A DNA stretch of 60,542 bases from Ruditapes philippinarum (taxonomy: Eukaryota): assembly GCF_026571515.1 (NCBI RefSeq), contig NW_026858762.1, positions 124,001 through 184,542 on the forward strand, given 5' to 3'. The notes under the pieces are model-generated. The model had not been told where the DNA came from and searched no databases. It was given only the letters and a program-made list of their open reading frames with translations. Each line of letters starts with the position of its first letter. Positions within the stretch are counted from its first letter, which is position 1. This document shows, one piece after another, positions 2,820 through 53,526 of the stretch. A program made the position numbers and the translations under genes.

Positions 2820-3132
2820 TTTAGTGTCCAGCTTTATTTGTCATCCAATGAAAACACTTCATTTCTTAAATATTATGTGTGTTAATTTTCATAGAAGAAA
2901 AAAAGTCGATACTATATTGAAATCCGTTCATAGTCGCCTTCTATTTTTCATAGTGCTTCATATAGTACCGCGTAGTGACGTAATGAAGGGCCAAATAAAG
3001 CTTGACACTAAATATGTTAGTGTTCATCCTTTGCTGTTCTACAGAAATTAGAAACATTCTCCTGTCGCTATCGCTCCCGTCGAAGTTTCTAATTTCTGTA
3101 GAATAGCACGGATGAACACTAACATATACATA
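2820..3132 (-). mobile_element. Non-autonomous hairpin+IR element (family E), copy 1
   Basis: 21-bp IR pair at 2820-2840/2992-3012, followed by a ~115-bp hairpin (3012-3127). The whole element is the reverse complement of 3564-3874. Confidence 0.8.
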
Positions 3133-3312
3133 GTATTAAAAAAAGGAAATGCTGAGAAGACCAGCGCGCTACCACTACACTACAATGTCTCACTGCAAAT
3201 AGTATGACTAACAAAAAGTACAATACTACCCATACACACATGACTTACCTTTTCTGAAGTGCACTGATCCATGTTATGTTTACAACGGTTCCGAAATAAA
3301 TTAACTTCAACA

Positions 3313-3506
3313 GTAGTGTCAAGCTTTATTTGGCCTCATTCTTATTTACTTTATTACGCCACTATGCGGTTTTATGAAGAACTATGAAAAATAGAAGTCG
3401 TCGATATTGTAGATCTATCGGTTTTTGTTCTTCTATGGAAATTAACGCAGATATTTTTTAAGAAATACAGCGTTTTCATTGGATGACAAATAAAGCTGGA
3501 CACTTA
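3313..3506 (+). mobile_element. Family E, diverged body-only copy
   Basis: tagtgtcaagctttatttggcc...ggatgacaaataaagctggacactta matches the IR-bounded body of 3684-3874 but lacks the hairpin. Confidence 0.7.
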
Positions 3507-3563
3507 TGTTAATGTGATAATTGAGATAAGGAGTGTCAATGTGATATTTTTCGAATTAACTGT

Positions 3564-3874
3564 TATGTATATGTTAGTGTTCATCCGTGCTGTTCTACAG
3601 AAATTAGAAACGTCGACGGGAGCGATAGCGACAGGAGAATGTTTCTAATTTCTGTAGAACAGCTAAGGATGAACACTAACATATTTAGTGTCAAGCTTTA
3701 TTTGGCCCTTGATTACGTCACAACGCAGTACTATGAAGCACTATGAAAAATAGAAGGCGACTATGAACGGATTTCAATATAGTATCGACTTTTTTTCTTC
3801 TATGAAAATTAACACACATAATTTTTAAGAAATACAGCGTTTTCATTGGATGACAAATAAAGCTGGACACTAAA
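3564..3874 (+). mobile_element. Non-autonomous hairpin+IR element (family E), copy 2
   Basis: Hairpin ~3569-3684 with apex cGAcggGAgc-gata-gcGAcagGAg, then IR pair 3684-3704/3854-3874. Confidence 0.8.
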
Positions 3875-4559
3875 TAATTATGATGTTAACTAATCAAACT
3901 GGATTATTTTGATTTAAAAATAGCTTAATTATAAGGTTGTATGAAGTTGACCTTTTCAATGTTTTTTTCTTAGTCGAACTTTGTTTATTGTTTACGTCAG
4001 CCATAAACATCTTTTTATTGGTCGCTTCTGATTTTGGCGGTAAATATTTTTGTCCATTTATTTCCTGACAACATTTTGGTCATTCTGTATTTCGTTGACT
4101 TAGAGATCACATGTTTTAAAAATTAAAAAATTACTTGATATTTTCGTACAGAACTGTTCAACGTTGTTGAAAATTTTAATTTAATTTATTGACTGTTATG
4201 TTTATCAGGCAGTTAAAACATACTAATTGAGAGGAATTTCGGAAACTTTTTAAAATTCTTCGTTTTGTTTAAAAACAAAACGTGCACATATTTTCTGCAC
4301 GTGTCAACATTTATTATTTAACATTATGATGTTAATCAAACAGATATTTAAGATAAACGTAAGTTGTTACAATGTATAATTTGTATAGACAATTTTAACT
4401 GTCATTTTCTTGAACTCACAGTAAATGATAAATAAAAATAACGTCTAAAAAGTATTCGTTGTATCAGTCAAATCATAAATGTATGTGTACAACAAAACCA
4501 TTCATGAATCATTACGTTTTCTTCTAAAAAAATTTGACAGGGGTCACAGGGCTATTATT

Positions 4560-4702
4560 GATGATGGTGTTAGTTGTGGTGGTTTTGGTGATTATATTGA
4601 TGGTGGTGATGATAGTGTTACTGGTTTTGTTGCTGATAATGGTGGATGTGGATGATTATATTAGACAGTGGTGGTTTTGTTGTGGGTGATGGTGATAATG
4701 AT
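4560..4702. repeat. Degenerate (GGT/GAT)n low-complexity tract
   Basis: Runs of gatggtggt/gttggt trinucleotides. Confidence 0.7.
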
Positions 4703-4736
4703 ATTTCAAACTAAACAAATATATATAATAAAAAGT

Positions 4737-4840
4737 TTATTATACATATGACTGTACAATATCGGCTCGTCCATTAAGACTTTTTCAGCTGTGTACTCGT
4801 CCAAATATATTCCCGTATTGTACAGTCAAATGTATAATAA
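4737..4840 (-). mobile_element. Partial terminal hairpin of a hairpin+IR-type element (family D)
   Basis: Outer arms ttattatacatatgactgtacaata / tattgtacagtcaaatgtataataa. The interior keeps two CTCG motifs, consistent with a right arm whose left partner has been deleted. Confidence 0.5.
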
Positions 4841-5719
4841 CCCTATAAATATATCTAATCACTTTCCCATAATCTCTTCATTATATAAGGACACCACAGG
4901 TGTTTACTTAATTAATTTTAGCTTTAAAGATATACCAGATAATTTATGTATACTCTAATGCTATTGTTTCTGTATAAAATAAGCACTTTCAAATACATTT
5001 TGTAAGCAGGTAAAAGAAAGGACCAGCGCAGCTTCCCATATTAGTTTATTCATTCTTTTATTCAAATTTGACATATTTATTAAGAATTTTATAGATTTCA
5101 ATAAACTTCCATGATTAAAATATTTTATTCAAGGATGAGCATAGTATATCTTTAACATATACAAGAGTATATATTAACTATGAAATACAGCCAGTTTTAA
5201 TTATATTTATATATAGAGAGATGGGTAGGGTATTTCCAAACATTTAAGGTGAAACATGCAGTATACTATCACTTTAAAATTAACCAACTTATCATACCAA
5301 AGTCACTCAATTAATTATCAGTATAGTATGTCCTTAATATTTAATAGCAGTGTTTATTCTGGTTGAACACTGGTTATGTTAAATCTTAAGATTTTATCAT
5401 TTGTGCTATTATGTTTTAGATGTTTAAGCCCAGAATGGCTATATATTCATGTATTTTATATAATGTTGTGTATAGATGAGACTGGAATAAATAAATAAAT
5501 ATTAAAATAAACAATATGTAGTCGTTTGTGAAGGATTACTGTGCGAATGACACGGTCGTAAACTAGCGCGAAAGCAATATGTTATGCTTGGTTTAACACG
5601 TCCTTAAAAGTGCATATGTATTAAAAGTTAATACGGGTTAATTCTACTTTCGGTTTTAGCTAGAGTTGTGTTGTATCTTGAAATTATTTTACACATTTTA
5701 AGACATTTAATGTATAAAT

Positions 5720-7425
5720 ATGACATACTATATATTGTCATTTTTAGTTCTTTGTCTCAGTTTAGAGATGATATTTTATATACAAAAACTGGAGACGTTA
5801 CAGCTCGAGTACCGTTCGTTATCTGCTCATGTACATGGGCATGGTGAGTTTTTATATTATTTACGTCTCAAATTTAAATCAAGTAAATTAAATTCAGTTA
5901 TGGGCATTTTGACAGTTTAAGCCAATATGATATGTTTTTGTATTAAGACCGTCAATTTCTGTTAACCAGGAACGTTTATTATACTTTATAAATCCAGAAT
6001 TTCCTACTTTCGATTTTGATGTGGCTGATTTGCCATGTCGTATTTTCACTCCATGTTACGCAATGCCAAACACGACAATACGACAAAGTGGCACACATCA
6101 GCCACCATAGCATCTTTATTTATCATCTATAACCCTTCTTACCTCAACGCAGCACACCCCTAGATATAAAAAAAATCATGAAACATTCGAAACATGTATT
6201 TACAAATAAAATATTGTGAAGTGAATTGCAAGAGCTCAAATTTTGCAAAATTAACCCTTACTGCGTTAGTCAGGCAGTAGAAATATGGTGATAAATACTG
6301 AAAAATCAGTCATTTATCGCACATACGATCTAGCTTGGATCTTAAATATTTCTACTTTTCTTAAAATCTTACAACTTTTTTTCGCAACTTTGATTTTTTA
6401 AAAAAAATATTTTGGCTCATTTGGAGGCATGTAACTTTAAAGATAAGAAAAAACATATACATTCTATAAAAGGTATTTATCCTATTTTACTTGCTAAAAC
6501 AATTAAGGTACTTTAAACATAACCTGGATTTTAGAGACACCTATAAAAAGTTTTATTCATCTGCCTAAAAGCCCTTTGATATTTTCATTACAGAACCTTG
6601 AGGGCGGGAGTACAGGGCTGCGTTCCATGACAGTTACTCTTCCCTGTTGATCTGTCTTCTATGTGCTCTCATATCTTAAATTACTGATAAAACATTTTTG
6701 ATTTGATTTGTATTTCAATCAAATCTAATGTTCCAGAGTAATTAAGTTTCAACTAAAAATTTACATGCTAATTACTTTACGACTTTTAATTGTTTTATCA
6801 TATTTTTAAATGGCAAGTAGATTGAATATAATTTTTTAATTTAAATGAAAACTCATGAATAAACATGTATCTTTATTTTGTAGGCAGAAAAAGGGAAAAT
6901 TGCCCAGAGCAAACAGAAGCAACATGTGTCCGTGATAATACATCTGGAAACAGTCGACCTATCGTGAACGCATTCTCCGTAAGTGATTCAAGATCTGTGT
7001 CTCCAGCAGAATCTCAAAATAAACTACACAACTATGCTAAAATTCATTTCAACGAAGGAACAGATTTTAACGCGGACACAGGGACATTTTCTTGTAGTAA
7101 ACCCGGAGTGTATTATTTCACTGCCTCTCTGATCAAAAAGCGTGCATATGAGAATTCCGAAAAAGTTGATCTGGTACATTGTATTATTTACAAAAACACA
7201 GAAACTATGCTGGAATTACTTGTCGATCCTAACGACGGCCCTAAAGTTGATGTAAATAATATCTCTGCAGATATTGGAAGTACGGCTGTGACTAACTCGA
7301 TGGTTGTACGACTTGAAAGAGGCGACACAGTTTATCTAGGGGATTGTGACAACCCACTGACATCTCTGGAGCCTTACTCTTCTTTCTCCGGATTTTTGTT
7401 GTACCAAGATGTCGGAAGCATTTAA
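5720..7425 (+). CDS. C1q-domain-containing protein, copy 1 (exons 5720-5843, 6884-7425)
   Basis: Exon 1 encodes MTYYILSFLVLCLSLEMIFYIQKLETLQLEY (hydrophobic N-terminus) and ends in phase 1 at G|gtgagt. Acceptor ttttgtag|GC joins in frame. Exon 2 has gC1q motifs: AFSV, FNEG..FN..TG.F.C..PGVYYF, L..GD.VYL, SSFSGFLLY. Confidence 0.9.
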
Positions 7426-8104
7426 GCGTTAAGATATTCATATTGTCAATGTAAGCCGTAAACAGATATATGTTTGTCATTTAAACTTATAACGACAATA
7501 GTTGTTTTCGAATGTGTTTTTACGACAGTATTGGGGATTGCAGTAAGGGAATCATGCAATTTCATGCTATCTATATTATCATTTTATCTAAGCTCACCGT
7601 TGTTAAAATATTATTAACAGGAGGCACACCTACATGACTATTTAGATAAGACCACAAGTGATCCATTGTCACACCCTAAAGTAATCAACGTGAATAGAAC
7701 ACCAAGGGATGTACTTCTGGTAGTTTGTTCTTAAGGATCATTATATCACAAAATTTAATAAGGAGCTGTATACAGGGTAACTGTTTGTTTTTGTCAGATT
7801 GAGGTCCTCGTTCATCTTATATAAAAAATGAAACCTCATAAACCAGGCTGTAAAAATGCCACCCTAAATATTGGCACATCCACCCGTCTGTCCGTCTCTC
7901 TGTCTGTTTTGCGAAAATGATATTTCATTTTGTTACTTTTTATCATTTTATTTATCTGTTGCCGGTCCTGATTAATGACTCAACTTTATATTATTAGTTT
8001 TTTTATTAATATCTTATGTTTTGTTTTTATAATCCAAAATTATCGCATGACCGCCACAACTTTCCTTTGAAGATCGGCGTTCTCTAAATTCCAGTATTGG
8101 AAAA

Positions 8105-8168
8105 CTTTGGGGTGCTCTAAATGAGGTATCAGTACGCTTTGGGGTGCTCTAAATGAGGTATCAGTACA
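8105..8168. repeat. 32-bp direct tandem duplication
   Basis: ctttggggtgctctaaatgaggtatcagtac occurs twice. Confidence 0.9.
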
Positions 8169-8194
8169 CTTTCTCGCGCATGTCCAGTTTATTA

Positions 8195-8650
8195 TTTTAA
8201 GTTCTCATTCCTTAGAAATAGAAACAGGGAGATATATGAGAACTGATAGAAATAACAGATTGTGTAAATTATGCCCGTATAAAAATGTTGAATCAGAATA
8301 CCACTTCTTATTATGTTGTCCCTTATATTCAGAACTGAGAAAATCTTTTATAAAACATGATCTTTTCCACTCTTAAATAAGTTCTATTCTATTATGTCAT
8401 CAGGAAATAAAAGTAGAATATTGCAACTATGTAAATTTTTAGATAAAGCATTCGCATTAAGATCTAGTGTTTTAGAAAAATGCAAGAATTGTAAATTTGA
8501 TAGTTTCTGCATTTTTATGTGAACATTGTATATTTGTATTGAATGTATTGAATGTATGTCATATTTCAAGTGATTTATGTATGTTTTGTATGTATTGCCA
8601 AAGGCAAAGTTTTGTCGAAAAATGCAATAAAATTTGAATTGAATTGAATT
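8195..8650 (+). mobile_element. 3' fragment of an RTE-X-like LINE nested in the Crypton-like element
   Basis: Translates as LSSHSLEIETGRY...RNNRLCKLC...VESEYHFLLCCPLYSELR (ORF2 C-terminal Cys/His motif). Ends in aataaa and a (tgaat)n tail. Confidence 0.85.
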
Positions 8651-8768
8651 TTATTTCAAATGATAAAGTGAGCATACCTGAAAAAGAGCAAAGCAAAACC
8701 GAAAACATTGAAAGAACTTATTTTTATTTATCAAATTTACAAATCATGTCTATCTTTTTTTTTCTTCT

Positions 8769-10874
8769 TCAAAACTTAAAAATACAGTTATTATAAACAT
8801 GTTGTCCTCCCCGGAACAAATTTCCGGGTTTCAAAGCGGTTGATTGGTTGTTTTTGGATTCGTCATCACTTGCGTGAGTTGCGTCATGTAGAAGCGTTTC
8901 TGTTGATGGTTTATTCAACATTTCGCTTTTGACCTATTCCCTTGCATTCCATTCTGGCGGATTTAATTTATTTGGAAATGTCTACCAAACATTTCAATTT
9001 GTGGGTTTATTTTAACGTCGGACACCGGCCACGGATTTTCGATGGCCTGTTCGTTTTCATGATTTCTTGTTCGGATAAAGACTTGTTTGCGCAAGTCTTT
9101 TTTCCAGAGTGATTAGTGTAAACACCTTTAAGTTCCCGCGAACTGACATATTTCTTTCATAAAACCTTATAGTTTATTCACGCCTACAACTTGATTTTGA
9201 AAAACGCACTTTTCCTGGCTTTCTGGGAAATGAATTTGGTCTCTTATATAAACGCTCCATCTCCAAAGGATTTCAAAAATTGGTCATTATAGTAATCCAC
9301 TATGTTTTGCCGATTGTTGTAGTGTTTTTATAACTTTAGGTTTCAATACGGCCGGTGTTTCAGGCCACCAATATACGTTTTAGAGTTCTTTCCTGTTATA
9401 AACTATAACCTTTTCATTAGAATCTGAAACCTATTTCAAAAACTGATCAGTTTTCCAAAATTTCCTGTGTTCGTCATATCCCCTTAAAACCGAAGAGTTT
9501 TATGTACAGTTATAGAAGAAAACAGTGTGATGATTAAAAGAAAGAGCGTTCTTTATTACCAAATTATTCCCTTTTCCCAAATAACTTTTTCTTCGTCTTC
9601 TAAAATGGGCTGAGCTTTCCCGTCTTTTGCCGACGACGCCTTCTATTCGTTAGAAATTTCATCTGTGCATACAAGAACACTCCTAAACCTTGCATAATCA
9701 GGATTTTTCTCGTCCAAAAAGTTCATACCAGATGTTCCACAATCTCGCAGCTTTCTAAGAAGGCCACATACTAAATGGTAGAGGGAAAGTAATCGCCATT
9801 CTGCTTCCTGACCTCGACGACAAATCTGAAACAATGATCAATTTTTTAATTTTTAGCTTTAAACAATGTTTAACAGGAGATACTGACCGAAGAGCCAGTT
9901 AGTGAATCACAATCGGAACGTCCTTGACTATTATCTATAATAACTTCGGAAATAATACGGATTGAAAGTAGTTCTACCACGTGGTTTTTGATGTAAACAG
10001 AAACAGTGTGTGTTATGTAAAACGAATGTATATTTTGACATCCAAAGGAAAATAATGTTTCGGTACAATTATGTTTGAAAATATATCTAACAACACTTTT
10101 TAATTAAACAATTAATTAAACAATCCCCACTGATGTACAATTTTAATCAAATTCGACTTGATGTCATTTAGTACTTTTGGTTTCTACAACCCTATTAATA
10201 AAATATATATAATAATGTATTGTTTTGCTTTTGTATCTATGAATTCACTTATATTAGGTGGACTTTTACTTGATATAATCGAAATAAAACTTTTCAACTA
10301 CTCCCAACATAAAATTTACGAATATATCTCTGAAATATAAAGTAGAGAATTTTCTAGATTTATATTTGAAATCGAGGTAGAAATTAATATTTAACACTGA
10401 GAATAGATTCATGAACTTACCTCGACAAATGGATATTAATGTCCAATTCCTCCAACACTGGTATTCCAGGCTTCGTTTTTCTCCACGCCTCAAATGTATT
10501 GTAAGCCCATTGCGTGTTACGGTCCGTGTTCTTTGACCTTGAACCAGCGCATCAAGGTCAGAGTCGGACACGCTTTCTCCAAAACGTTCTCTTTTTTCAT
10601 TATTGAAGGGTTTCTCTTCCTGCTTAAAATCCTGGTCAAAGTCAATCAATTGGAAGTTGCCGAAATAGTTCGGTTGTACATCATTTTCAAAAGTGTCTAT
10701 TTGACTACTTGTCAGTAGGCCTATGTCATTAAAAACACCACTACGCTCAATTTCACTTAATGTCTGTGAAAGTAACAAATCATCCTGTGTAACGTTTTCA
10801 CTATTAAACGTAGTGCTCATTTCAAACAAGTCCAAAGCCTGCGATAAAACAAAATCATTATTATCTAACTCCAT
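8769..10874 (-). pseudogene. DUF3504/Crypton-type tyrosine recombinase, two exons (10874-10421, 9825-8769), many frameshifts
   Basis: Across frames: RFGESVSDSDL, NTDRNTQWAYNTFEAWR, intron gtaag...tttcag, FVVEVRKQNGDY, SLYHLVCGLLRKLR, AQPILEDEEKVIWEKG, TVFFYN..LFG.RGYDEH (catalytic R), TNHSGKKTCA (HxxK/R), EIM..TGH (H), C-terminal VYNNCIFKF*. Confidence 0.85.
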
Positions 10875-11122
10875 ACTTGTCCCACGACGGGCAAACTGAA
10901 AATGACAAGAATTTGGCGCTAAATAAGGTAAACTGCTAGGGCTTAGCGAATTTGATTGTTCATTTTTCTAGGGGTTCACTATATCTCTGCCAGCGAAGGA
11001 GCAGAGGCACCGAATGGGTGTATTTCTATGTGTATCTCTAAAATTATCATTTGTTTAAATCATGCGATAATACGAAATATCGAAAATCTCCAAAAGAAGT
11101 TGTGGCGGTCATGCGATAAAAC

Positions 11123-11300
11123 AGTTACAGAATATTAACTCGGACTTCACCGGCTGGTATCAGCGCATGGGGCGACAAAAAGGGTCAATCATGGAAATTA
11201 ATCTCGACGTTCCGTCTCGATTAATTTCCTATGATTGACCCTTGTTGTCGCCCCATGCGCTGATACCAGCCGGTAAAGTCCTCGTTAATATTCTATAACT
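11123..11300 (-). other. Long imperfect palindrome with strand-specific tandem G.A pairs and a GAA triloop
   Basis: Top strand: aatattaa-CTCG-gactt...aaattaat-CTCG-acg-ttc-cgt-CTCG-attaattt...aagtc-CTCG-ttaatatt. On the bottom strand this gives two CGAG/CGAG pairs and an acg-GAA-cgt apex. Confidence 0.9.
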
Positions 11301-12234
11301 ATTACGTAAAAGTCATGTCCGAGATCATAATAAGAGTCATCAGGCACTGTACTCGAGGAATTGACTTCTTTTATTTTGTTTATGTTTCTATAACCAGTAA
11401 CAGGTTTTGTCTCCCGGCTTTCTGTCATCATTTTGATCACGAGTGCAATTCATCGAAATGAGCTTCCTTCGGAAGGATCATAATAGGGTGTGACAATCAA
11501 TCATGCTATAGTTGATACTCTAGCGGCCTATTTGGAAATTTACGAACTTTTATAAGCCTGTTGGATAAATATGTTTCGATAAGATGACAAAACTCATCTT
11601 CTGGAAAGAACATTTACTGATATTCTAACAAAATTTACAAATCGTTATGTAAGAGAAATCGAATAAATAGAAAATTACTCTAAATTTGGCCGATACTTAG
11701 ATACTTGCATAAATGTTGGTTAATTATAAATTATTACATATATAACCTCGTCAGATTTTATTCTTTTATGAAGGAAGACAATATTTTTTGTAGTATCTAG
11801 TAATATACAATGTAGGAAATAACAATTATGTCTTGTCTATAACGATTGTTTCTATAAGTCTATGTTTTACTTTTGATTAATCAACGGGTATTGTTACGAT
11901 GGCCGTCTGTACTTGTTGTTGTTGTTGTTGCTTTAATAAAATTGTTTACAATCAAAATGAAGTTTTATCAATAGTGAAATACTGTACTCACATATATTCA
12001 TATTGAGATTACATGACGAAAGTTAAACCAAAGTAAACCGTAAAACATGATCAAAGTTCAGTCTTTTTACAGTACTTTTCCGACAACTGTCAAAAATATA
12101 TTAATTACCGTGAGGTTTTAAAAGAAGAACTTACTTAATTCGGATTTTTTTTATGAATGACGTATTTTCTAACAGACACCTTTTAAGCGTTTATTTGCAA
12201 TATAAAATTGAATAAAACATAAAACAACAACTAA

Positions 12235-14909: not shown

Positions 14910-17900
14910 ATGACAAATTATATATTGTCATTTCTAGTTCTCTGTCTCAGTTTAGAGATGATATTTTATATACAAAAACTGGAGACGTTACAGCTAGAGT
15001 ACCGCTCGCTATCTGCTGATGTACATGGTGAGTTTTTCAAATTTAAATCAAGTAAATTAAATTCAGTTATGGGCATTTAGACAATTAAAGCTGGCCAATA
15101 TGATATGTAAGACCGTCAATTTCTGTTAACCATGAACGTTTATTATACTTTATACATCCTGAATTTCCTACTTTCGATTTTGATTTCTGCATTTTATGGT
15201 TGCTGATATGTGCCATGTCGTATTTTCACACGATAATACAACAAAGTGGCACACATCAGCCACCATAGCATCTTTAGTTATCATCTATAACCATTCTTAC
15301 AACAACGCAGCACACCTCTAGGTATAAGAAATCATGAAAAATTCGAAACATGTATATATAGATGATATTGAAGAGTGTAGATTTAATACTAAATTTATCG
15401 AACGAGTTGAATAAAATCATATTATGCGAGCCTCTGGCGAGCATAATATTGTTTTAATAAATTTAGTATTGAAACAACACAAATATAATATTTTATTTAT
15501 CACATAATTATATAAAATAAGAACGGTAAACTGTTAACAAGAGTCATTTTTATTTGATGCACCTATAGTGTAAAGGTAACAAGTCAAAATAGTTTATTGG
15601 CATAAACGTTTTACACGTTCATCGCCAAGTTATATAAATGGCGGTTAATAATTTCACATAAAACATTGCATATACAAATACAAATTTTGTAATAAATACA
15701 TGTACAAAACATACATAATATTTAAGTACAGAAAAGCATGGTGATGAATTTAACATAGCTATATAATTACAGGCAAATAACAGTGAAACACAAAAAACAA
15801 CATTGATTTTCAGATTAATATTGTTTGTAAATAAAGAAAAAAATATTAACAGAAAACTAGACAGTATTTCTTTTTTCAAATGATAAGTGAATATATTTAG
15901 CTAATTTTATCATAACGTTTTTAGAAGAAGCAGTCATTATACTTTTAAATTTGTTTATATTTGGCCAAGTATAATAGTATCTTGGTAGATAAAGTGCTCT
16001 TAAATCAGAATAATATGGACATATCAATAACAGATGATACTCATTTTCAACCACTTTCATATTACATTTCACACATAATCTATTGTTTCTATCTATATTT
16101 CTGAAGCGACCTTCCTCTATAGCTAATCTATGAGCCGAACATCTAAATTTTGAAAGGGATTTTCTATGTTTATCATTTGTTATAAAACTAAGATATTTTT
16201 CATAACCAAAATCAGTTTTTAATTTCTTTATAAACTTCTCATTTTCTAGATACACGCAGTTCAGCATACCAATTTTGCATATTTTGATCTTTAATACGTT
16301 GGATAATACTATTTAATTGAGAATTATTTAATACTAAGTTTGGATCCCACAAATATTGTAAACCAAGCGAATTTAACAAACGTTTTACATTTAATGTCCA
16401 GGCATTGACTAAATTATCATTCTGGTCTTTTAACTTCATAATTTTATACATAAGTGTACCTGGGATTTTCCTAATTCTAGACCAAAATTTTATTATTCTG
16501 ATATTACGAATGACTGATAATGGAAATTTACCCGATTCTCCATAAACGGTAACATTAGCGCGCTTTAACGCTATGTTTATAGCGCAAATGACGTCACGTC
16601 AAAGTGTTATTACACTAGTGTAATATCGTCTAGTGTAATATCGTTTTTATTAAAAGGCTTACACTCCTGCGCCACGGTTTATGTGATAATTAAAAATAGT
16701 GTATTGTTAAGTGAACGAAGAAAGTTATTTACACATTGCAAGAGCTCAAATTATTGCAAAATTAGCCCTTACTGCGTTAATCAGGCAGTATAAATACGGT
16801 GATAAATACTGAAAAATCACTCATTTATTGCAAATAAGATCTAGATGTAAACAATCTTGAATATTTCTACTTTTCTTAAAATCTTACAACTTTTTTCTCA
16901 ACTTTGATTTTTAAAAAAAATATTTTGGCTCATTTGGAGGCATTCAACTTTTAAGATAAGAAAAACATATACATTCTCAAACTCCTCACAGTGATTACCT
17001 CCCTTGGCAGAATTGTAATCACTGCCTTCAAAGACGTCACATGATGATGAAAGTCACATGACGTTACGTCGAAATTCAAATGTAAATATCGACCGTTACA
17101 AAGAAAATCTAACGTCATTTTTCTCTTTCTGTTTTATTTTTAACTTTTTGTACCTACGTCCGTTATATTTTAACAAAAAATTATCAAAAGTACACAAAAT
17201 AATGAAAAATAAATTAAAAAGCTAAAAAATATAAATATCCAAATTTGGATATTTCAATGTTTGTGATGGAAGAGATCTCTGTACTGATAAGGGGAGATCA
17301 CTGCGTAGGAGATTGATACATTCTATAAAAGGTATTTATCCTATTTTACTTGCTCAAACAATTTAGGTACTTTAAACATAACATGGCTTTTAGAGACACC
17401 TATAAAAAGTTTTATTCATCTGCCTAAAAGCCCTTTGATATTGTCAGGTACAGAAGCTTGAGGGCAGGAGTACAGGGCTGCGTTCCATGAAAGTTACTCT
17501 CCCCTGTTGATATGTTTTCTTTGGATATGTTTTCTATGTGTTCTCATATCTTTAATTACTGATAATAACCTTTTGATTTGTATTTCAATCAAATTTAATG
17601 TTACAGAGTAATTAAGTTTCAACTAAAATTATAGATTTTAGATTTTATTTCCAAATACATGTGGGTTATACCCATGAGTACACAGCATATATACAAACAT
17701 ACATACATACAGAGACATACTATCAAAGTCATTAAATTTATATAGCATATATTTAACATTTACTGTATATTTGAGACATAAGTTTGGTTTAATATGAACG
17801 GAATTATCATATTACAGCAAGGTTTAAATGAAGCACAAGTTTTGCATAATGATACCGATTACATTACATTTACCTTCCTAGCTAATATAATTTACGAATA

Positions 17901-24285: not shown

Positions 24286-27200
24286 ATGACAAATTATATA
24301 TTGTCATTTCTAGTTCTCTGTCTAAGTTTAGAGATGATATTTTATATACAAAAACTGGAGACGTTACAGCTAGAGTACCGCTATCTGCTATCTGCTGATG
24401 TACATGGTGAGTTTTTCAAATTTAAGTCAAGTAAATTAAATTCAGTTATGGGCATTTAGACAATTAAAGCTGGCCAATATGATATGTAAGACCGTCAATT
24501 TCTGTTAACCATGAACGTTTATTATACTTTATACATCCTGAATTTCCTACTTTCGATTTCGATTTCTGCATTTTATGGTTGCTGATATGTGCCATGTCGT
24601 ATTTTCACACGATAATACAACAAAGTGGCACACATCAGCCACCATAGCATCTTTACCCAGCAGGCACATCAACGTTGTTTCAACGTTGAATTATGGTCAG
24701 ATTTCAACGTTGAAATAAGGTTGTATTTATATTCGGATTTGAAAGTTGAAACAACGTTGAAATTTCAACGTTGATACAACGTTGCAGCTTCAACGTTGGC
24801 ACAACGTTGAAGTTTCAATGTCATTTCAACGTTGAAAACCCACCATACTTTAATTTTTGGATATAAAGCAAAGTAACCAAGTTTAACAAAATATCAAGAC
24901 AATATTAAATACTTCAGATATTTTATTTCAAAAATACAGTTGAAGTGCAGCTTAAATTCACTTTAAAACTACAATATGTTCCAATCTTTTCTTCTAGATC
25001 TTTCTGGGTATGTCAAGTGTTTGAGTACTTCTTAGGCTGTCTCTTACTGCTTCTGCAAATAAAAATAAGAAGTTTGTAGTTAAAAGTGACTTGGTCAATC
25101 TCAAATTTTACATATAATTACTCAACTTAGTGATTTGTTTTTATCTTAAAATGCTTTTCTCTAAGATTTACATCATAAAACAGCATAGAAATTGAAACAT
25201 AGCTAAGTTTCATGTTGACAGCAAATACTGTATATAAGACAACAAAATCTTTTTAAAAAGAAGCTATTTAAAAGTCTCACCTATGATTGGTCAGCATATT
25301 CCCAAGAAATTAACATTCTAGGCTCTAGCTAAGACCATTTTATGCAGCATCCTGAAATCAACAAACATGTAAATTTTATATAAATAATGTTACATGAATA
25401 TTCCGAAAATCATATTTTTTAAGACAAGACAAATATCCAGTAGAATCTAGTTAAAAAATTTATACATAATCATTGTATTTTAAAGAAATTCAAATATATA
25501 AAATAATAAGAATAAATTTCAATTTAACAAACCTGACAGTCCTTTTCATGTTGAATGTATGGTATACAGGCTACAGCTGCAATACTCTAAATTCCAACCA
25601 GGACCAGGATCTAGAATATAAAATAATATATAATAAAATAGAAATAGATTTATTATTCCCCATAAATTTACGACTATTAAACTTTAAAGTTTAACACTCA
25701 AATTTGTTATTTAACTTAATAATATTGTGTTTTTTTTTCAAACTAATTAACACTGTATTATACTTTCACTAAAATATAAACATAGTTATATATATTGACG
25801 AATCGTCTTGGGACGTAAATTATGTGGGCCGAACTACTTTATAGGTTTCAATTTTATAAATGATTAAATTCTTATTAGGATATAGTACAGACAATTGTTT
25901 AATAATATGAAAAATAAATTAAAGAAAGACAAGATTTGTAAAATCATAAAATGCCAAGGACATCAATAACTTCATGCTTACGAGGCCTACAGAACCCAAA
26001 TCTTTCAATTAGGTCGCGAAAACGTGTCAAATCAACTCAATCATGTGTTTTCATCTCTCATTTATTTCATAAAGTAAATTAAAGTAGAACTTTAAGAATA
26101 AATAATAATAATTTAGAAAATAATCAGTAAGCTAAAGTAAAACATTACGGTAATACCTTCGAAATCCAAATAAATTGCCAATCGTGTTGTTTTTCAAATT
26201 TTCCAAACAGCGCCACCATTTGCACGAACGATAATCATAGACAACAAACAAAATCATAGACCGCAACAATTACTTCCCCTGACCAGCGTTACATTTTGTA
26301 TTTTATAAACGGGGTTTTGACTAATATCAATTTATAATTAATCTTATTCATAAAGAACTAAAAAATAAAACAACAAACAATAAAAGGTATTAATTAATAT
26401 TTAAAGCGTTAATAGAAAGTGAAAAATTATTTTCAACTTTATTTGTTTCAGCGCTAATTTTGAATATACGGAAAAAGATTGTAACGCAAATTTTCCTGAC
26501 AAAAATCACTTACAGACTTATTCAATAAAGGAATAATAACACAAAATTAGTGGTATGAAAGTTTAAATAATGATCAAAATAAATGTAAAACTTCGACCAT
26601 AAACAACGTTGAATCAACGTTGAATATACATCGGCTGTATATCCGTATGATCGTCCATAGTTGAATATTGGTTGAACAACGTCACGACCATATTTCAACG
26701 TTGTTTCAACGTTGAAACAACGTCGTGTGCCTGCTGGGTAGTTATCATCTATAACCATTCTTACATCAACGCAGCACACCTCTAGATATAAGAAATCATG
26801 AAAAATTCGAAACATGTATATATATAGATGATATTGAAGAGTGTAGATTTAATACTAAATTTATCGAACGAGTTGAATAAAATCATATCATGCGAGCCTC
26901 TGGCGAGCATAATATTGTTTTAATAAATTTAGTATTGAAACAACACAAATATAAAATTTCATTTATCACATATATAAAATAAGAACGGTAAACTGTTAAC
27001 AAGAGTCATTTTTATTTGATGCACCTATAGTGTAAAGGTAACATTAGCGCGCTTTAACGCTATGTTTATAGCGCAAATGACGTCACGTCAAAGAGTTATT
27101 ACACTAGTGTAATATCGTCTAGTGTAATATCGTTTTTATTAAATGGCTTACACTCCTGCGCCACGGTTTATGTGATAATTAAAGATAGTGTATTGTGAAG

Positions 27201-44419: not shown

Positions 44420-46604
44420 TCTCTACCATTTACGGAGATAATTTTGAAAACTGAGTTGAAATTGGTGTCATCTCTTTGACTCTTATGCTTTTCATAATAA
44501 CTTTATTGATGATTTAAGAACGTAAGTTTTATTATGATCATTTATAAATTACGTCATCAAGTTGTATTTATTTACGCAATTCAGTTTTATTCCCATCATT
44601 GAATCTTGTTTCTATATTTATGAGGACATTTTAATTAAAATTCATCCAATGCATATAAACACGACATCCATATCAAAAACATGTAACAAGTATTTCTCCT
44701 AACAATCAAAAACACAACTAATGATCATTTGTACCTCTGGAGGCTTCTTCACAATCAAACGCTAATGGAACTAAGATGTTGCTTGTGTTCTGTGTTTAGA
44801 TTTAGCAGAAGAAAAAGATGAAGCTTTAAGTAGAACCAGTTATTTAAACACAATTTCGTCAATAGTAACTTCATAAAACTTTCTACTTGGGCATTAACAG
44901 AGACAACAAACGCAGTAATAAGTATATTGTACTGCGCGTTAGGCACATATTCGCCGCTATTTGTGACAGTTATTTTCATTAGTTATAGGCCAATCAAATA
45001 TGCCGTTTCGACGTTTAGGTCATACAAGTATGTAAATAGAAAAGGATCTAATACGCTAATTAAAGACGGCTTGCGAATTTCTGAACGGAGTTTAAAACAG
45101 AGGCCAAAAGCGAAAATGTTAAACCTGGGACTTTCTTATCAAATGCAATTAGCAGTGAATTTAACATCAATATTTCTATCCAATAGGACCTGACAACGTT
45201 TCCGGAAATCGACATCTTACAAACAATAGTACTTAAAATTTAACACATATGTTACAAGCAAAGGGATGGCTTTATTTTAATGTCTTTAAAAACTAACAAA
45301 TTTCAAAGGAAATATATAAATAACCTGAATGTAGCTGTAAAAAATAAGATATTTTTACAAAAGTTAATAGACTCTTAGTACAATAAATGAATCCCTCCCC
45401 TTTGAAACTTAAGATTAAGATGCTCAAGAAAAATGAAATAAATAAAAAAAAGAGTGGTAGAAATTTTAATAAATACAAAATTGTGCACGAAATACGTCCA
45501 CCTAACGAGACTTTCCTTTATTTTGTAATCATTTAATCTAAATATAGCTATTCATTAAGTGAAAAAAATTAACAAAAACATCAACAATTATTGTCCTTGT
45601 ATTTATTTTATTGTGCACACGTGCGCTACAAGTCTTACTTTCGGGATAATATTTTACAAAAGGGAATAGACTGTTGAAGCAAAGGTAATGCCAAAATAAC
45701 AGGAAAATACAAAAGGAAATAGGCGGACATAGAAAACTAAATATCAAATGATAAAGTCATATAAAAGAAAATAGACTGATATAACAAACTTAATTTAACA
45801 ATGGTAATATAATGCAAAAGAAATAGACTAACATAGAAAACTTAATGCCAGCATGATGAAATAATAGAAAAGAAATAATCTAGCATAGTAATGATAAAAT
45901 GATACAAATAGAAAACGACTGACGCAGCAAACTTAATGCCAAAATGATAAATTTCAATAGAAGAATATCGGCAAATGTTTCCTTATGATCTATGTAGCAA
46001 GTAAAAATGATGCAAGTCTAACAAAGGACTATCATTTTTCCATTGGCCTAGTAGTTAAAGAGGACATGCTGCTTAAAGCCACAGTAATCAACCGAAGACA
46101 TGCATCGGACAAAAGGTTAAATAGCGAAAACGCAACATTGGAGTAAGAAAAGCATATAATTTGTTGAATAATCAAGAAATGTCCACAGAATGTAAAAGAA
46201 GTTCAATATTTCGAGAAAAATATCATTGATAAATTACCAATACATGTTAATTGCTTCTATGTATCAAATGCTATTTTTCCCCCATCGTTGTTAATATATA
46301 TTAACAAGTTGTTTATTTCTAAATTCCAATTGTTGAAAAAAAGTTTGTCTTTGATAATGTTTCAATTCTATACTTTTAAATATACCAAGAAGTTTATTCA
46401 TAACTTTTTATCTTTTTATCATATCCTATGGAATAATACTCACACGAAGGTTATGCTTAATACCTATTATATCGTAGTATCAGCAGATACCATGCTGTAT
46501 TTCAATTAGAAAATATACTAGAAATTATGTAGTGTTAAACAAAGTCTGTGTTGATGTTCTTCCATTGCACTTGTTTATACATTTACAGTGTAGACATAAT
46601 ATGT

Positions 46605-47213
46605 TTATTCTATGTTATCAGATGTTTCCGCGTCACTTTCTTTATCACTGTCGATGTCATTATCTTCATACATGAAATCATTACTTTCATATTCCTCATC
46701 TTCATCTTCTTCAATTGTATCTACACCATAAGATTGAACGTTAGCATTGTAAGATTTATTTTGGTGATAATAATCAAACTCATCTATTCCACTTATTTCC
46801 TGTGATTTACTGGATGTTAATGTATTGAAAGCTTGTATAGCAATACGGTGTACATTTATTTGTTCACGCTCCTTTTCACTGACAGGTATTCCTCGAAAGA
46901 AGTCATCAAGCGTCCTCTCCTCATCCACCTCATGCTTTTCTCTTTTCAAATTTTTCATTATCATGAAAAATATTCCACATGAATATAATAGAAGAACTGT
47001 GACAATATACATGAGAGCACCGAAATCTTTGTTTATTTCAGGTTCCTTGTCAGTCTCAACTAAGTCAACAAACAGCTGAAGTGATGAACTATTTCTATAA
47101 AGGCAGCCTCGTAAAATAGTCAACAAAAGTGGAAATGATGTCGTTTTATTTGTAACTAATGTATTATTCCTGTCAAATTGGGAACACGAAATGTGCAATA
47201 CACGCTGCTTCAT
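46605..47213 (-). CDS. Uncharacterised single-pass membrane protein, copy 2 (202 aa)
   Basis: Nearly identical in protein sequence to 37094-37714. Confidence 0.8.
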   Translation of the reverse strand: MKQRVLHISCSQFDRNNTLVTNKTTSFPLLLTILRGCLYRNSSSLQLFVDLVETDKEPEINKDFGALMYIVTVLLLYSCGIFFMIMKNLKREKHEVDEERTLDDFFRGIPVSEKEREQINVHRIAIQAFNTLTSSKSQEISGIDEFDYYHQNKSYNANVQSYGVDTIEEDEDEEYESNDFMYEDNDIDSDKESDAETSDNIE

Positions 47214-49646
47214 TGTGACAGCATCAGCATGTTTTCATTCAAATACTAAAATAAATAAAAGTCTTATGATCTATTATGACTTAAAATATGCAATTAACAT
47301 TCCGTTTTCTTCTCTCCATGCTTATAAATATCCAGAGAAATAAGTTCAAATACTCCCAATATCAAACACTATAAACTCATTACTGTTCAAGAAATACCTA
47401 CAGTGCTTATTTATGTACAACAATCACCGATCCTTTAAAAGTATTAGTTTTAAAAACATTAATAATAAAATATTTTTACAATTTATAAATTTGCAATTAG
47501 GTTTTGTAATTGATGTTGTAGGTTCAGATAAATCGAAATGATATAAAATAAAAGCATATTACCTGATAATGTTGTAAGACCTGAATACAATTTCATGATC
47601 TAAATAAAGCACGTATATCCCATGTAGCGCATGTGGAAAACTTGTATGGTTGATTAATCAGTCCATAAAACCTCGTCTCTCACACAATAAAATTTTCCAA
47701 TAATATTAATTAGCATGCAGAAGTTGCAGCAAACGCAGCCTGGTACCAATAGATTGATCGCCATTAATGTCCGATACCAACATCCAATCCTGAGAAATAA
47801 TTTTATCTTAAAAGTAATATATTTCACTTTAAGACACATATAAAAAAACTTATTACGCTTTCAAAGGAAAGTGGTTCCTGACACGGTGAGTGGCGGACAG
47901 TAACATCTCTTCATCACGATAGGCAATGACGCGAAGAATGTATGACCAGTTCCCTGTTTATTTTTGAAATCCGCTTGCAATCTCTACTGTCGTCCGTGTA
48001 CAGGCTCTATCAATCGAGTAAACAAAAAGCTTTACAAAAATATTTTTTTATACATGAGATAGCGTAAGAGAATCATAAATAATTACTTGACAATTAAGTA
48101 GTAAGGACACGTTACAAATATCTTATCGCGTGTATGTTTATCTGATTAATGCCATTAAAGAATAGGCGTTGTATAATTAAATCAAGACACTGGTGAACGT
48201 AAAAGTTTAATATCAGAGATAACATCTGTCAGTGTTTTGAAAGAGAGTAACATGTCACAACAATAGTCTGTATTGCAATAAAAGAAGTTCACAGCTAAGA
48301 TAACCAGCATTATGAAATCAAATTAATGTACATTACTTAAATAGAATATAAACAGTGTTCATTACATGAATTTTAATACATCTCTGAAATCATAGCAGTG
48401 AATTATATTTTGATGATACATTATTACTATGTATGATTGCAGGTAAAAAAGTATATATCGCTAATCAACAGAATTTTAGCAGAAATACCAACCATCGTAA
48501 CATACGTAGTCACGTCAAAGCAATAACTTAAGTACAATGTACATTCTTTTAATTTTTGAAAAATGTATTTTTCACGGGAAAAAATAAGATATGTGTTAGA
48601 ATGCCTGATTAGTAGTTATTTTTATATTAAATTTTCTAAATTAAACACGGCTTATTGTATGTTTATGACTAGTAGATATCATCACTTGCTTAAAGAATAA
48701 AAGAAAAAGAAAACTTCTCAAGTAGGCCTAAAGTACACTTTAAACTTAAAAGGTAAGGATAGTTCAGTTACTGTTTACTCTTGGTTTATTTTTGTTGTAG
48801 TTAGATTTAGTTGACAATTTCAGATCATCACAGTATTTTTGTTTCCTACGCCTCGGGTAACAGTATTTTCCTCGGGATGATATTTTTACTGTTACCCACA
48901 AACCCATGTCTTATTGATATAATATCATCTAGTGGTCTTTAATGTTTATCATCACATATTCAAACAATCATTTCAAACAGTGTATTATTTTATCATATTT
49001 AATACACAGTAAAAGAATATATAAAATGCAAATACAATCACATGTACGTAATAACCTGAAGTAACGTAGTTAATCGGTTTATCGTGATATAAAGTAGAGG
49101 ATCGCATAGACAGAGACCACATATGATTGGAATCAATAATATTCTATTCTATTAATTCTGTAGATTTGTCTGATATATCAAATTACACGTTCCTGTGATA
49201 TTTGGACATTTACAGTTGAAACATCCTGGTTAAAATCTCTATATGAAACGTTAATGGTCCTTTGCGAAGATTAAACCTATACTGATTTTCAGCTATTAAA
49301 TTTAAAATATGGACGTCATCGGTAACCAGTAATATATGCTCATTGTTATGAGGCCATCTGGAACAGTTAATTCATCATAATAATAATGTCTTATCAATAT
49401 TTTATTGCTTCTGGCGTGTGTACATGATGCTTTTTTATACTGTTGATTATTGTTATGCATGTAATTATCTTTTATTCATACAAATTATGCAAAAATCCAA
49501 CAACAAACAATTGTTTACAACGGTAAAAACACATTTGTATCTCTTGAGCTCTGTGTGTTAAGAGCTATCGTGCTTTAACATAAACTTTAACATAAACATA
49601 GATTTCTCTCATCACATTAGCAAATGTTACATTAATAGTTACTTAA

Positions 49647-50003
49647 AGATCCTGTAACACAAATTTGTTATGGTTTTATATCATAAATATGATGCTCAAA
49701 TTAAAATTTATCAATATTGTAAGTTCCCATTAGCATTATTTATAAATATATTACCGAATTTAACATTTCATGTAAATAAAGGGAGGCAATTAGAAATTTA
49801 TTTTCTATAAAGTCTAAGTCAAATTTGTCAATAAGAAATTAATGAATATATTTTAATGATTACATATAATGTGCCCAAATATTTGCAGTATATATTTTAC
49901 ATATTCTTCGATGTTTATAAATTGTTTTATAAGCATAATTATATACATATATAACATTTCATTTAAGTGTGATATACAACCTCAATTACAACATACAGCA
50001 TCT
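49647..50003. mobile_element. MITE with TTAA TSD and AG...CT termini (Kolobok-like)
   Basis: ttaa|agatcctgta ... tacagcatct|ttaa. Absent from the paralogous site at ~39945. Confidence 0.7.
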
Positions 50004-50899
50004 TTAACATTTACACATGTAACTAGAAAAATGAAACGTGCAATCCATTTATGATCAGCAAACAACACGATGTATTTTTACGTTGTATTATAGTTTTTAT
50101 TTTATCATTTTAATTTGTATTTTATTTTTAAAACAATATACATTTGCATTTGTAGTCACAGTTAGTGACGGATCATCTTAATTTTGAAAAAAATGACTGT
50201 TGTAGACCTCAAAGTACTTTTATATTCTTATTTGACTATGCAATATACTCATTTTTCCTAAATGTATTTTAAAAGCTTTCCTTTAAGGCAAATAAAATGA
50301 AGTATAGACTTTAGAACGCTCCCCACATTCAAATTGAAACAAAGTGTGAACAAAATAAAAGTTCATTTTAATAAATAAGCCAGACATCAGATAACATTAC
50401 TGTTAATCGTTTTATTGTATGATTATATTCTAGAAAGTTAAATGTCAGGAGGAATACGTTTGTCACATCATGTTCAGATGATCAATTCCAATCAAAACGA
50501 GTAAAGTTGTTAGCTAGATTGAATTCTGTATGAGTGACATATATCTAATTACCTTTCGCAGTGACATACCGACATTCACCTTTCAAATACTCCGAAAATA
50601 TTTTCAATTCTGATGGGACATGTAAAGTGATAATTGACACCGGCATATCTTGTTATATATTGTTTTCCGCTAAATCTTTTGCTAAGGGACCTAAATGATA
50701 TTGTACTAGCCTTCCATTTTGTGTTCTTTTTTTTGGTTAGAATTTTAATTTCATGGAAATATAGGTTAAAATTTTGGGCTTTTAAACAAAAGGGGTAATA
50801 TTTTTAAAGTTAAATTAAACCAAAAGATTTTAAAATATTTTCAATTTTAATAGAAAATTTGGGTAGCGGAAAAAACTTAAAAGATTAACCAAGAGCAAG

Positions 50900-51190
50900 A
50901 AGTTACTTTGTAATTTTGTCCTGCAAGCATATCATAAAAAAGTTAGGATAATCTTTATCACGTTCCAAAACTTCTTCATATAGATTAAAGGTAGAAACCA
51001 GTAGAGGGCATTAGGGCATTAACCTGAAGCAATTCCATATAATGAAAGAAAATCTAATATTTTCTCTAAATTAAAAGATGCATTTAATGTATTATTGGAA
51101 TAACCCATGTACAATGATTTGAGAAAACAGCTTTTAGATGAATATTTTTGGAAAAGTCCAAATATACCAAAATTTATTGAATTGTTAACA
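50900..51190 (+). pseudogene. Decayed RTE-X-like ORF2 3' fragment
   Basis: DAFNVLLE*PMYNDLRKQLLDEYFWKSPNIPKFIELLT resembles the C-terminus of ORF 57445-57849. Confidence 0.55.
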
Positions 51191-52479
51191 TGACAACATG
51201 CATTACGTCATTAATTCCAAAAACCCCTTTTTTCATTTTCCTCTATCAGGATATATTTTTTTAATTTATTATCCTTTCCCTACACGAACAGAAAGAAAGT
51301 TTTTGTCACACCTGTGCAGTCTGGCCAGGCTTTAGACAGTTAGATAAAAAAAATAATTAATTTTTAAAATTGATATCCCAAAGCTAATACAACAGCAAGA
51401 AATTGAAGTCATCTAATGTGAGCATGAAAGGTGTCTGTGTTTGTTTATCAGTTTTGATAATTTTATGTGTTTAGTACTTCTATGCGTAGTTACAACTGCT
51501 CTCTCCCTCTCTCTCTCTCTCTTAATTTAAAATGTAGTTTGCTTACTTTCCTATGGGATTTCGAAGTAGATGCAGTAATTGTTTATCTCGCAACTCGTTT
51601 AGTTTAGGAATATGACAATGGTAAGAAAAGAAGTAAAGAAACATATGACAAGAGGTAAAGAAAGATGCATGTATAATTTACTTAAACCCTAAGATGGATA
51701 CTAAATTCCGACTATGTTCCGAAGACAATCTAAATCATGCAATTCAATTTTGATATCTATACTTGACGCAAGAAATGTTTAGTTAACTTAAATTTCACTC
51801 AATAAATACACTCTAGTTACAATACGGACACTGATACATCATTTAGGAAAAAAATTCTAATATTTTTTGTTGTATGGATTAGACCAAATATTAAAAAAAA
51901 TTTGGTGAAATTCAACACAATCTATATGAGTATGTTTAAATTTATATGTTTAAAGATCATATTTCCACCCTTAAACCTCTTTTTCAACAAAAAATTTGAC
52001 ACCACACTCAACATATACAGTTCATCTCAGCTGTACCCTTTTAATTCATCAGAATGTTTTTTCTGATCTTTTATTATTGTTCAGCACACATTTTTTTTTG
52101 TTTTGAGTTCGTTTTTAGTTGCATGTTCTAATTTTTCCTTATGGGGCCTGATAATCATCCATCTTTTTCAAAAACCTACCTTTTATATGCAGGTTACACC
52201 TCTGAATCCAGTTCGCTTTCCATTTTATTTTGTTTCGCCTATTGTTTTCCTGTATAAGGTACACACATTCATTTACTTTTTTCGTGATATGTCATTAATG
52301 TGACTCATTAAAGTTTTTGTGATAAGCACCGTATGAACAAATCTGCACACGTTTCTTAATTCAAAATTCAACATTTTATGTTAAAAGTTGGACTCTTCTT
52401 ATAGTTATTATTGCTGCCAAGTTGAATTGAACTATTATTTCCAAAGATTGACTATTATAATGGTAATTGACCAATAATT

Positions 52480-52556
52480 CGTCACCTTAGTTCAGTAACG
52501 GGTTAACTCCTATTTAATTATGTAAGGAGTTAACCTGTTACTGCACTAAGGTGACG
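52480..52556. repeat. Near-perfect 32-bp-arm palindrome
   Basis: cgtcaccttagttcagtaacgggttaactcct / aggagttaacctgttactgcactaaggtgacg, two mismatches. Confidence 0.85.
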
Positions 52557-53526
52557 TATTGATAACGAAAACGTATATGACCATGATACAGTACAAAAAC
52601 TACTTAAATTATAAAAAGGATGCCCAACCCATTTTTTAAGATTGAGCGTTATCGATACATTTTGCGCGATATTTATAGAAAAAAGAAAAATATTCACCAC
52701 AGGCTCGTACATATATATGGAACTAGATGAATGATACATGTTTTGTCCGTTGAATCTAAGTTTTTTGGCAATATTTATCAAGCTGTAATTTTAAACCATT
52801 GTAATGTTTTATTTGGTAAATATTGACTTTAATAATAAACACACCCGTTAACTGGTTGTAAGTATATCCGTTGGTTGTGGGTAGAAAAGTTGTTAGCTTT
52901 GTAACTTTTTTATCCTGCAATCGACTGCTGCTTAATATATCATAGAAAATTATGTCTATAAATAGAAACAAAAAAATATCCTGATAATCCGGTTTAAAAC
53001 TGGCATTTATATAGTAATTTCTACCTGTCCTACTCGGAGTGATAATAGGTGTGTTTATATCTGTGTCAATTAAAACATAACAACGGTTAATTCACAATAA
53101 TCTCGTGGAAAAACTGCATATTTTACTTGTATGCAAATTTTATAACTGTTAACAATAATTATGTTGATGTTTTTACACCCGTTTTGTGTGGGACAGTCCC
53201 GTTAAGCAGGTGCTAGGGGCATGAACGTTAGCTTGCATTTTTCACTACCGATCATGAAGAGGCTCAATAAAGCGTTCAACATTGTCAATAAGTAATAGTT
53301 ACCGTACGAGGAAAAGGTCTGCATAGTATTTACAGACACGGGTGGCGATTTGAAGACCGAGAGAGCGTAGCGATCGAGGTTTTTAAAAGGCCACCGGGTC
53401 TGTAAATACTATGCAGACCTATTCCGAGTGCGGTAACTATCTTACCTACATGCTCTTTTGTTTTTCTATCCGTACATCGGTTTTTAACTCAGTATTTATT
53501 AATATTACTCACAAGAAACATATTAT

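Follow-up and report, generated by a model that had tools for sequence, protein, structure and literature searches.

Transposons of the clam Ruditapes philippinarum that end in strand-specific hairpins with tandem G.A pairs, and their possible movement by a Crypton-type tyrosine recombinase

In the integron cassette, the start TTRRRY pairs with the RYYYAAC that directly precedes the rest of the attC hairpin, and it is the bottom strand alone, reading hairpin, GTTRRRY, body and RYYYAA-3', that folds and recombines. The Cryptons of fungi and oomycetes have short terminal direct repeats of 4-6 bp. For animal Cryptons, neither direct nor inverted terminal repeats have been reported (PMC3212892), and Crypton ends are described as variable (PMC13465315). 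The Helitron2/Helentron elements have as their hallmark asymmetric terminal inverted repeats (IRs), one of which lies at the very end and the other directly beside the terminal hairpin (PMC3627910, PMC4067079), a layout that the HINEs of oysters share (PMC7492417). Here we analyze a stretch of 60,542 nucleotides from the clam Ruditapes philippinarum (contig NW_026858762.1, positions 124,001 to 184,542 of the forward strand; below, the window), which contains members of four transposon families, A to D, each with a long imperfect palindrome at one end; one of them, B, carries a gene for a Crypton-type tyrosine recombinase. We find that the hairpins of these families are built to fold on one defined strand, which is marked by tandem G.A pairs. 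This raises the possibility, to which we give slightly less than an even chance, that bivalve Cryptons and a large gene-less superfamily transpose via a folded single strand, with an attC-like hairpin marked by tandem sheared G.A pairs.

The initial annotation of the window had placed such palindromes at the ends of a recombinase-bearing element and of several non-autonomous ones. The palindromes of all four families lie at the positions that it gave (Table 1), and searches across the 1.41-Gb genome (15,874 contigs) revealed that each marks the end of a real interspersed family with exact ends. The family sizes are first-look candidate counts and hence lower bounds: at least 1,551 for A, the scored copies of which are ~99% identical, at least 154 for B, at least 2,134 for C, with an element length of 355 bp, and at least 538 for D, which has a full length of ~1,540 bp and ends in ..GGTAGGTAA. 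The ends and consensuses were obtained from 30 aligned loci per family, across which the element ends of B agree, and 90 genomic loci were retrieved overall. When read on the strand that bears the opposed GA steps (the GA strand, on which the hairpin is 5'), all four families show the same layout: 5'-hairpin, IR, body, IR'-3'. More precisely, a start of the form G/A-TA...ATAG-like leads into the hairpin, at or near the foot of which is an IR beginning with TTA; this is followed by the body and the partner IR, the last bases of which are TAA. Although the families had been described as unrelated in primary sequence, their ends share motifs: '..ATAG..' starts, IRs opening with TTA and 3' ends with TAA are common to all of them, and the 5' terminal GTAATAGTTA and ACGAGGA are common to B and D. 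The same order of hairpin, IR, body and IR' recurs in three additional families that were met by chance in the retrieved loci, with no adjacent IR across the other side of their hairpins. The IR and hairpin layout defined for Helitron2 (PMC3627910) is accordingly found in seven clam families, and the polarity proposed earlier, with the hairpin 5' and the adjoining IR after it, is seen in 7/7 families for which an IR pair was located.

The imperfections of the hairpin stems are distributed with a pronounced strand bias. On the GA strand, the consensus stems of A to D contain nine tandem GA/GA steps (two each in A, B and C and three in D), six of which have the form CGAG/CGAG, along with 11 G.T wobbles, no A.C and a single C.T. 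The D consensus has in addition one GA/AG step, and A combines its two GA/GA steps with single G.A pairs within an apparent 29-nt loop. The window copies of C are missing one arm of the outer of the two steps in their consensus. The apex loops are GAA in B, GTA in D, GATA (GC-GATA-GC) in A and TCT (GCC-TCT-GGC) in C. Tandem sheared G.A pairs in a pyrimidine-GA-purine context are very stable in DNA, as are C(GNA)G mini-hairpins, and the complement of the GA strand would bear T.C and A.C mismatches instead.

The same bias is apparent in a palindrome scan of 336 kb of DNA, comprising the window and the retrieved loci, which yielded 31 distinct palindrome families. GA/GA steps are present in 14 of these, and of the 61 tandem non-Watson-Crick steps, 29 are GA/GA or the complementary TC/TC, as against ~1.5% expected from base composition. 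Wherever a hairpin has several GA/GA steps they agree in strand (12/12 hairpins, 15/15 extra steps); G.T pairs outnumber A.C on the GA strand by 28 to 11 with individual decayed copies included; and, with energy parameters for DNA, the GA strand has the better fold of the two strands in 13 of the 14 families. Further, element B has a long and a 1-kb subfamily with bodies that differ by 20-27% and hairpins that are 98% identical; the single stem segment of the hairpin that differs is altered on both arms, i.e., it is a compensated change. The opposed GA steps in both arms, their enrichment over other tandem mismatches, the sequences of the apex loops and a compensatory stem change, all of which the initial annotation had either noted or proposed to look for, are therefore borne out, and its view of one strand built to fold agrees with the finding that each family has its G.A pairs, G.T wobbles and GNA-type loops together on a single strand.

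Neutral decay of a palindrome cannot yield this code because the change from CTCG to CGAG takes two adjacent transversions, and because strand-symmetric mutation would make G.T pairs as frequent as A.C pairs. These sequence patterns lend good support to selection for the folding of one particular strand.

The product of the gene in B belongs to the family of proteins combining QRICH1, DUF3504 and Phage_integrase domains: two intact relatives, P0003 and P0017, match the window at 8841-10533 in tblastn searches (E 6e-24 and 8.5e-19), and a HMMER search from a cleaner exon at another locus (L003) recovered these three Pfam domains in intact relatives of the B protein. The stop-free pieces of the window gene, which are too short, gave no Pfam match by themselves; its exons are better preserved in the genomic loci L002-L004. 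The closest protein is from Ruditapes philippinarum itself (88% identity), with further relatives in Mercenaria and Mytilus. When close intact relatives of the B protein are aligned with XerA, the His residues and the Tyr nucleophile of the R-H-R-Y catalytic tetrad match, and the second Arg is replaced by Lys. A metagenome scan with a recombinase relative returned three distant and uninformative loci, which are without long palindromes.

A whole-element census recovered at least eight full-length genomic copies of B, 78-95% identical, all of which share the hairpin and the opposite end. Seven of these at least eight copies have a DUF3504 match on the GA strand, open frames of 352-360 aa are present in two, and the genome as a whole contains hundreds of DUF3504 loci. 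This gene, a complete one of the recombinase type, is the sole gene in B, and B is the only member of these families seen to encode a protein. The proposed combination of a Crypton-type gene with this kind of end is seen in B, and in no other family here. Elements of 1 kb, which arose by internal deletions and retain gene fragments, are abundant, and their ends are conserved at 97-98% and 87% as opposed to 73-80% for their bodies. From their sequences, the long and the 1-kb forms would fit the usual pattern of an autonomous element and its dependants. In two B derivatives at different genomic sites (L006:1504-2497 and L008) the body is inverted between the IRs, and in both the crossover falls within the outer 13 nt of the IRs (TTATCGCATGACC). 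Consequently, the coincidence of the sense strand of the recombinase with the GA strand, which had been noted for the coding element, is not a fixed rule.

The mode of insertion can be read from the window itself, which has two empty paralogous sites for B, at 29811|29812 and ~20401|20402. When filled and empty paralogs are compared, the empty site reads AAAA|GTAA and the target bases are not duplicated; therefore, the ends of B are exact and there is no target duplication. At the junctions we observe a 3-nt direct repeat, with TA(A/T/C) in the flank and TAA at the element end: the ends read TTATCGC...CTATTAC, the targets are TA(A/T/C) beside the hairpin end, and most copies of B, C and D have TAA, TAT or TAC as the bases that flank the hairpin on its 5' side. 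This rule fits an insertion that immediately follows the final TAA of a D copy (locus L060), and likewise the insertions of two different GA-hairpin families at an identical ...GTTTAT site inside C elements (L066:1772-2582 and L071:1766-2737). Target choice may require more than TA(A/T/C). Given their shared end motifs and shared order of parts, A to D form a single superfamily of DNA transposons with no target duplication and one insertion orientation. Within it B is the gene-carrying form, and A, C, D and at least 10 further families in the genome are gene-less derivatives.

B resembles the described Cryptons, specifically CryptonA, in the type of protein encoded by its only gene, in inserting without duplication of the target, in the short direct repeat at its junctions and in being far outnumbered by gene-less derivatives. 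It departs from the animal Cryptons, for which no terminal repeats were found (PMC3212892), in that the clam elements have a 21-bp IR pair and a strand-specific hairpin of 100-190 nt. The best explanation of these elements appears to us to be an attC-like movement of a single strand by the Crypton-type tyrosine recombinase, a reading for which we consider the chances about even on the strength of the sequence evidence. For this we infer a circle, an exchange of single strands and the recombinase as the enzyme. The element would leave as a circle, or one of its strands would become exposed; in a free circle, IR', hairpin and IR would constitute one long imperfect palindrome. The GA strand would fold, stabilized and marked by the sheared tandem G.A pairs, the G.T wobbles and the C(GNA)G-type apex. 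Pairing of IR with IR' would bring the two ends of the element directly together at the hairpin foot, so that the last A of the 3' end (...TAA) stacks on the base with which the hairpin begins. The recombinase would then cut after the TAA at this foot, and the target after TA(A/T/C), and swap that strand, and replication would complete and fix the insertion. Such a mechanism would explain why target bases are not duplicated, why the orientation is fixed, why TAA and TA(A/T/C) form a direct repeat across the junctions and why the code is confined to one strand.

The topology and strand polarity envisaged here are those of an integron cassette with its attC. In both systems the linear form comprises a short IR, the body, IR' and the remaining hairpin, which join in the circle into a single extended imperfect palindrome; folding is limited to one strand, on which the hairpin is 5' and the foot is cut after ..AA; a tyrosine recombinase acts, in the clam as the putative enzyme; and no target duplication ensues. 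The integron system differs in being bacterial, in marking the strand by extrahelical bases in place of tandem G.A pairs, in using the fixed attI target as opposed to dispersed TA(A/T/C) sites, and in that IntI is not of the Crypton type. The resemblance would hence be one of mechanism only, with membership excluded in a eukaryotic system with no IntI. Likenesses also exist to the IS200/IS605 elements, for instance IS608, which also have strand-specific imperfect hairpins, cleavage sites set by pairing with bases at the hairpin foot, and insertion 3' of a 4-5-nt motif without target duplication. These, however, are prokaryotic, have hairpins at both ends and use a Y1 HUH transposase; no such gene was seen in the clam elements.

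The layout alone does not settle the enzyme because Helitron2/Helentron elements and the integron cassette both show it. It is possible, though somewhat less likely, that the clam elements are unusual rolling-circle elements of the Helitron2/Helentron type (HINE-like), moved by a RepHel HUH nuclease. This enzyme would recognize the hairpin in its single-stranded form and would cleave behind TAA at either end, and the recombinase gene of B would be a passenger. The Helitron2/HINE hallmark combines an IR placed 0-2 nt from one terminus, a second IR beside a terminal hairpin, no duplication of the target and T as the first base of an end (PMC3627910, PMC4067079, PMC7492417), and HINEs are major repeats of bivalves (PMC7492417), where short derivatives of this kind are abundant. 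Strand-specific folding, a short target motif and oriented insertion are usual in HUH transposons (PMC10288648); the genome has at least 117 RepHel candidates, of which more than 20 have open frames spanning 1,600-2,640 aa, including intact ones of ~2,000-2,600 aa; and the very high copy number of family A at ~99% identity also speaks for this reading. Yet RepHel was seen in no member: full-length copies of B hold only the recombinase gene, and the open reading frames of at least 110 aa in 86 retrieved loci matched no Pfam family, hence no RepHel beside the sampled elements. A comparison of the contigs with RepHel and those with hairpin matches found no overlap, which is uninformative with 40 matches scored per search. 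The clam ends and targets also differ from those documented for Helentrons, which are T-runs and TT sites (as compared with the supplement of PMC4067079), the elements are without a 5' IR, microsatellite or central tandem repeat, and their hairpins are 5-10 times longer than those of Helentrons and HINEs and carry G.A steps. Moreover, the hairpin is 5' on the folding strand, as in attC, and near the 3' end of the active plus strand of Helraiser (PMC5876387), so that the folding strand would be opposite to the active one there, a comparison drawn across subgroups. We favor the recombinase because it is the only gene of B and has persisted through ~20% divergence, because the ends and targets are not those of Helentrons, because of this attC-like position of the hairpin, and because the two flipped B bodies match the product of a site-specific recombinase acting on inverted sites. 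Several points weigh against it nonetheless. To our knowledge, no eukaryotic tyrosine recombinase acts on folded single strands; the position of the second catalytic Arg is occupied by Lys in all close intact relatives of the B protein; the window copy of the gene is dead and frameshifted; and the link to a recombinase comes from one family, B. In addition, animal Cryptons are reported without terminal repeats (PMC3212892), the end layout is equally the hallmark of Helitron2/Helentron (PMC3627910, PMC4067079), recognition of hairpins together with a 3-nt target is routine for HUH enzymes (PMC10288648), and intact RepHel frames are plentiful in this very genome.

A different view would hold the palindromes to be double-stranded or cruciform protein-binding sites, or to be maintained by hairpin-templated repair, with no defined single-strand intermediate. 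Long palindromes are indeed able to extrude, and the hairpin sequence is highly conserved between the B subfamilies; however, the restriction of G.A and G.T to one strand (G.T to A.C 11:0 in the consensuses; 12/12 hairpins) is left unexplained, and as both strands extrude in a cruciform, one arm would bear T.C and A.C mismatches, which makes this view improbable. The selected fold might also be that of an RNA made from the GA strand, such as a 5'-leader or the precursor of a small RNA, given that G.U wobbles and tandem CGAG/CGAG G.A pairs stabilize RNA too and that in B this strand carries the gene in sense orientation. We consider this very unlikely: the C(GNA)G triloop is a DNA mini-hairpin motif, the hairpin lies exactly at the element end and sets the insertion junction in gene-less families as well, the body is invertible relative to it in the two B derivatives, and an Rfam search of the window matched no family.

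In the literature on Cryptons and transposon hairpins we found no report of strand-specific transposon ends marked by G.A pairs, nor any of terminal structures of animal Cryptons, for which PMC3212892 states that none were found; B now supplies exact ends. Should the recombinase be the enzyme, attC-like single-strand recombination would exist in animals and give the tyrosine recombination of single strands known from integrons its first counterpart among eukaryotes; the ends described here would be the first defined for animal Cryptons. Should it be RepHel, the families would represent a new Helentron branch with a working strand opposite to that of the Helraiser model. The signature of opposed GA steps, G.T but not A.C pairs and a GNA apex, all on one strand, reveals the working strand and can be searched for in any genome. 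The families themselves constitute a large and partly very young (~99% identical) share of the clam genome, which standard annotation would enter as unclassified miniature inverted-repeat transposable elements.

Table 1. Elements, hairpins, inverted repeats and genes in the window, and the family ends on the GA strand
Feature	Position	Strand	Remarks
Element A copy 1	2821..3129	-	hairpin 3010-3129; inverted relative to copy 2
Element A copy 2	3567..3873	+	hairpin 3567-3686; IR TTAGTGTCAAGC..; 3' end GGACACTAA
Possible decayed relative	4720..4857	-	42-nt arms; two ACGAG motifs in 54-nt spacer (minus strand); weak
Element B, full-length	8040..11305	-	GA strand: 5'-hairpin, IR, recombinase gene, IR'-3'; exact ends, no target-site duplication
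B IR at opposite end	8040..8060	+	TTATCGCATGACCGCCACAAC; element end on GA strand ...GCGATAA
Nested repeat inside B, unrelated	8197..8650 (453 bp)	.	foreign to the element; no such insert in other full-length B copies
Crypton-type tyrosine-recombinase gene in B	8841..10874	-	degenerate, frameshifted, multi-exon; QRICH1/DUF3504/Phage_integrase family
B IR adjoining hairpin foot	11099..11119	+	GTTGTGGCGGTCATGCGATAA on + strand
B terminal hairpin	11119..11305 (187 nt; 78-nt arms)	-	two CGAG/CGAG; apex GACG-GAA-CGTC; 4 G.T wobbles
Element C copy 1	15358..16689	+	hairpin 15375-15480; IR TTATCACATA at 15497; 3' end TTTATGTGATAA
Element C copy 2	26824..27178	+	355 bp, uninterrupted; hairpin 26840-26946
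Element D, truncated copy	53292..53618	+	hairpin 53292-53441; three GA/GA; apex GC-GTA-GC; IR TTACCTACATGCTCTTTTG at 53442
Family A ends (GA strand)			5' start GTATATGTTAG; 3' end GGACACTAA
Family B ends (GA strand)			5' start GTAATAGTTA...ACGAGGA; 3' end CATGCGATAA
Family C ends (GA strand)			5' start ATAGAGGATA; 3' end TTATGTGATAA
Family D ends (GA strand)			5' start GTAATAGTTA...ACGAGGA; 3' end CCGGTAGGTAA

Some of the window copies have been altered by later events. The first copy of C is split by an unrelated insertion of 963 bp (15582-16544), and the two window copies of C are paralogs of one insertion event, not separate insertions, carried along in tandem segmental duplications. The insertion site that two other families share inside C elements corresponds to window position 16580/16581, following ..GCTATGTTTAT, and has a small perfect palindrome, CGCTAAT|ATTAGCG, ~20 nt upstream of it. 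The window copy of D is cut at 53618 by an abutting long interspersed nuclear element (RVT_1 E 1.9e-18). This neighbor was considered as a coding partner of D and ruled out, as other copies of D run past the point corresponding to 53618 into unrelated D sequence. It is a non-LTR retrotransposon spanning 53619-57849 on the plus strand, with a weak match to an endonuclease, and its 3' region has tandem repeats of ~110 bp (57890-58170). Between the two complete copies of A lies a diverged A-like unit without a hairpin, consisting of IR, body and IR (3314-3505, plus strand). The 453-bp repeat nested in B has at least 25 further separate interspersed copies with 92-98% identity. Three remnants of palindromes had also been named: the one at 4720..4857, with a single TC/TC step on the plus strand, may be a decayed relative and is a weak candidate, and those at 41150-41205 and 48845-48910 are weak only.

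The window as a whole is AT-rich (G+C ~31%) and contains tandem segmental duplications with units of 9-11 kb at 5600-33000 and 36000-55000. Within the duplications are C1q-domain genes (6865-7425, 18135-18707 and 28530-29108), and the duplicated region also has a C-type lectin gene on the minus strand (33244-34398). Short tandem-repeat arrays occur with units of ~150-160 bp at 12278-12954, 21403-22208 and 30821-31356 and with units of 197 bp at 1001-1800, unit sizes that are typical for the central repeats of bivalve HINE/pearl elements. Finally, a palindromic octamer, CAACGTTG, is densely arrayed at 24666-24858, where it gives rise to numerous overlapping inverted repeats.

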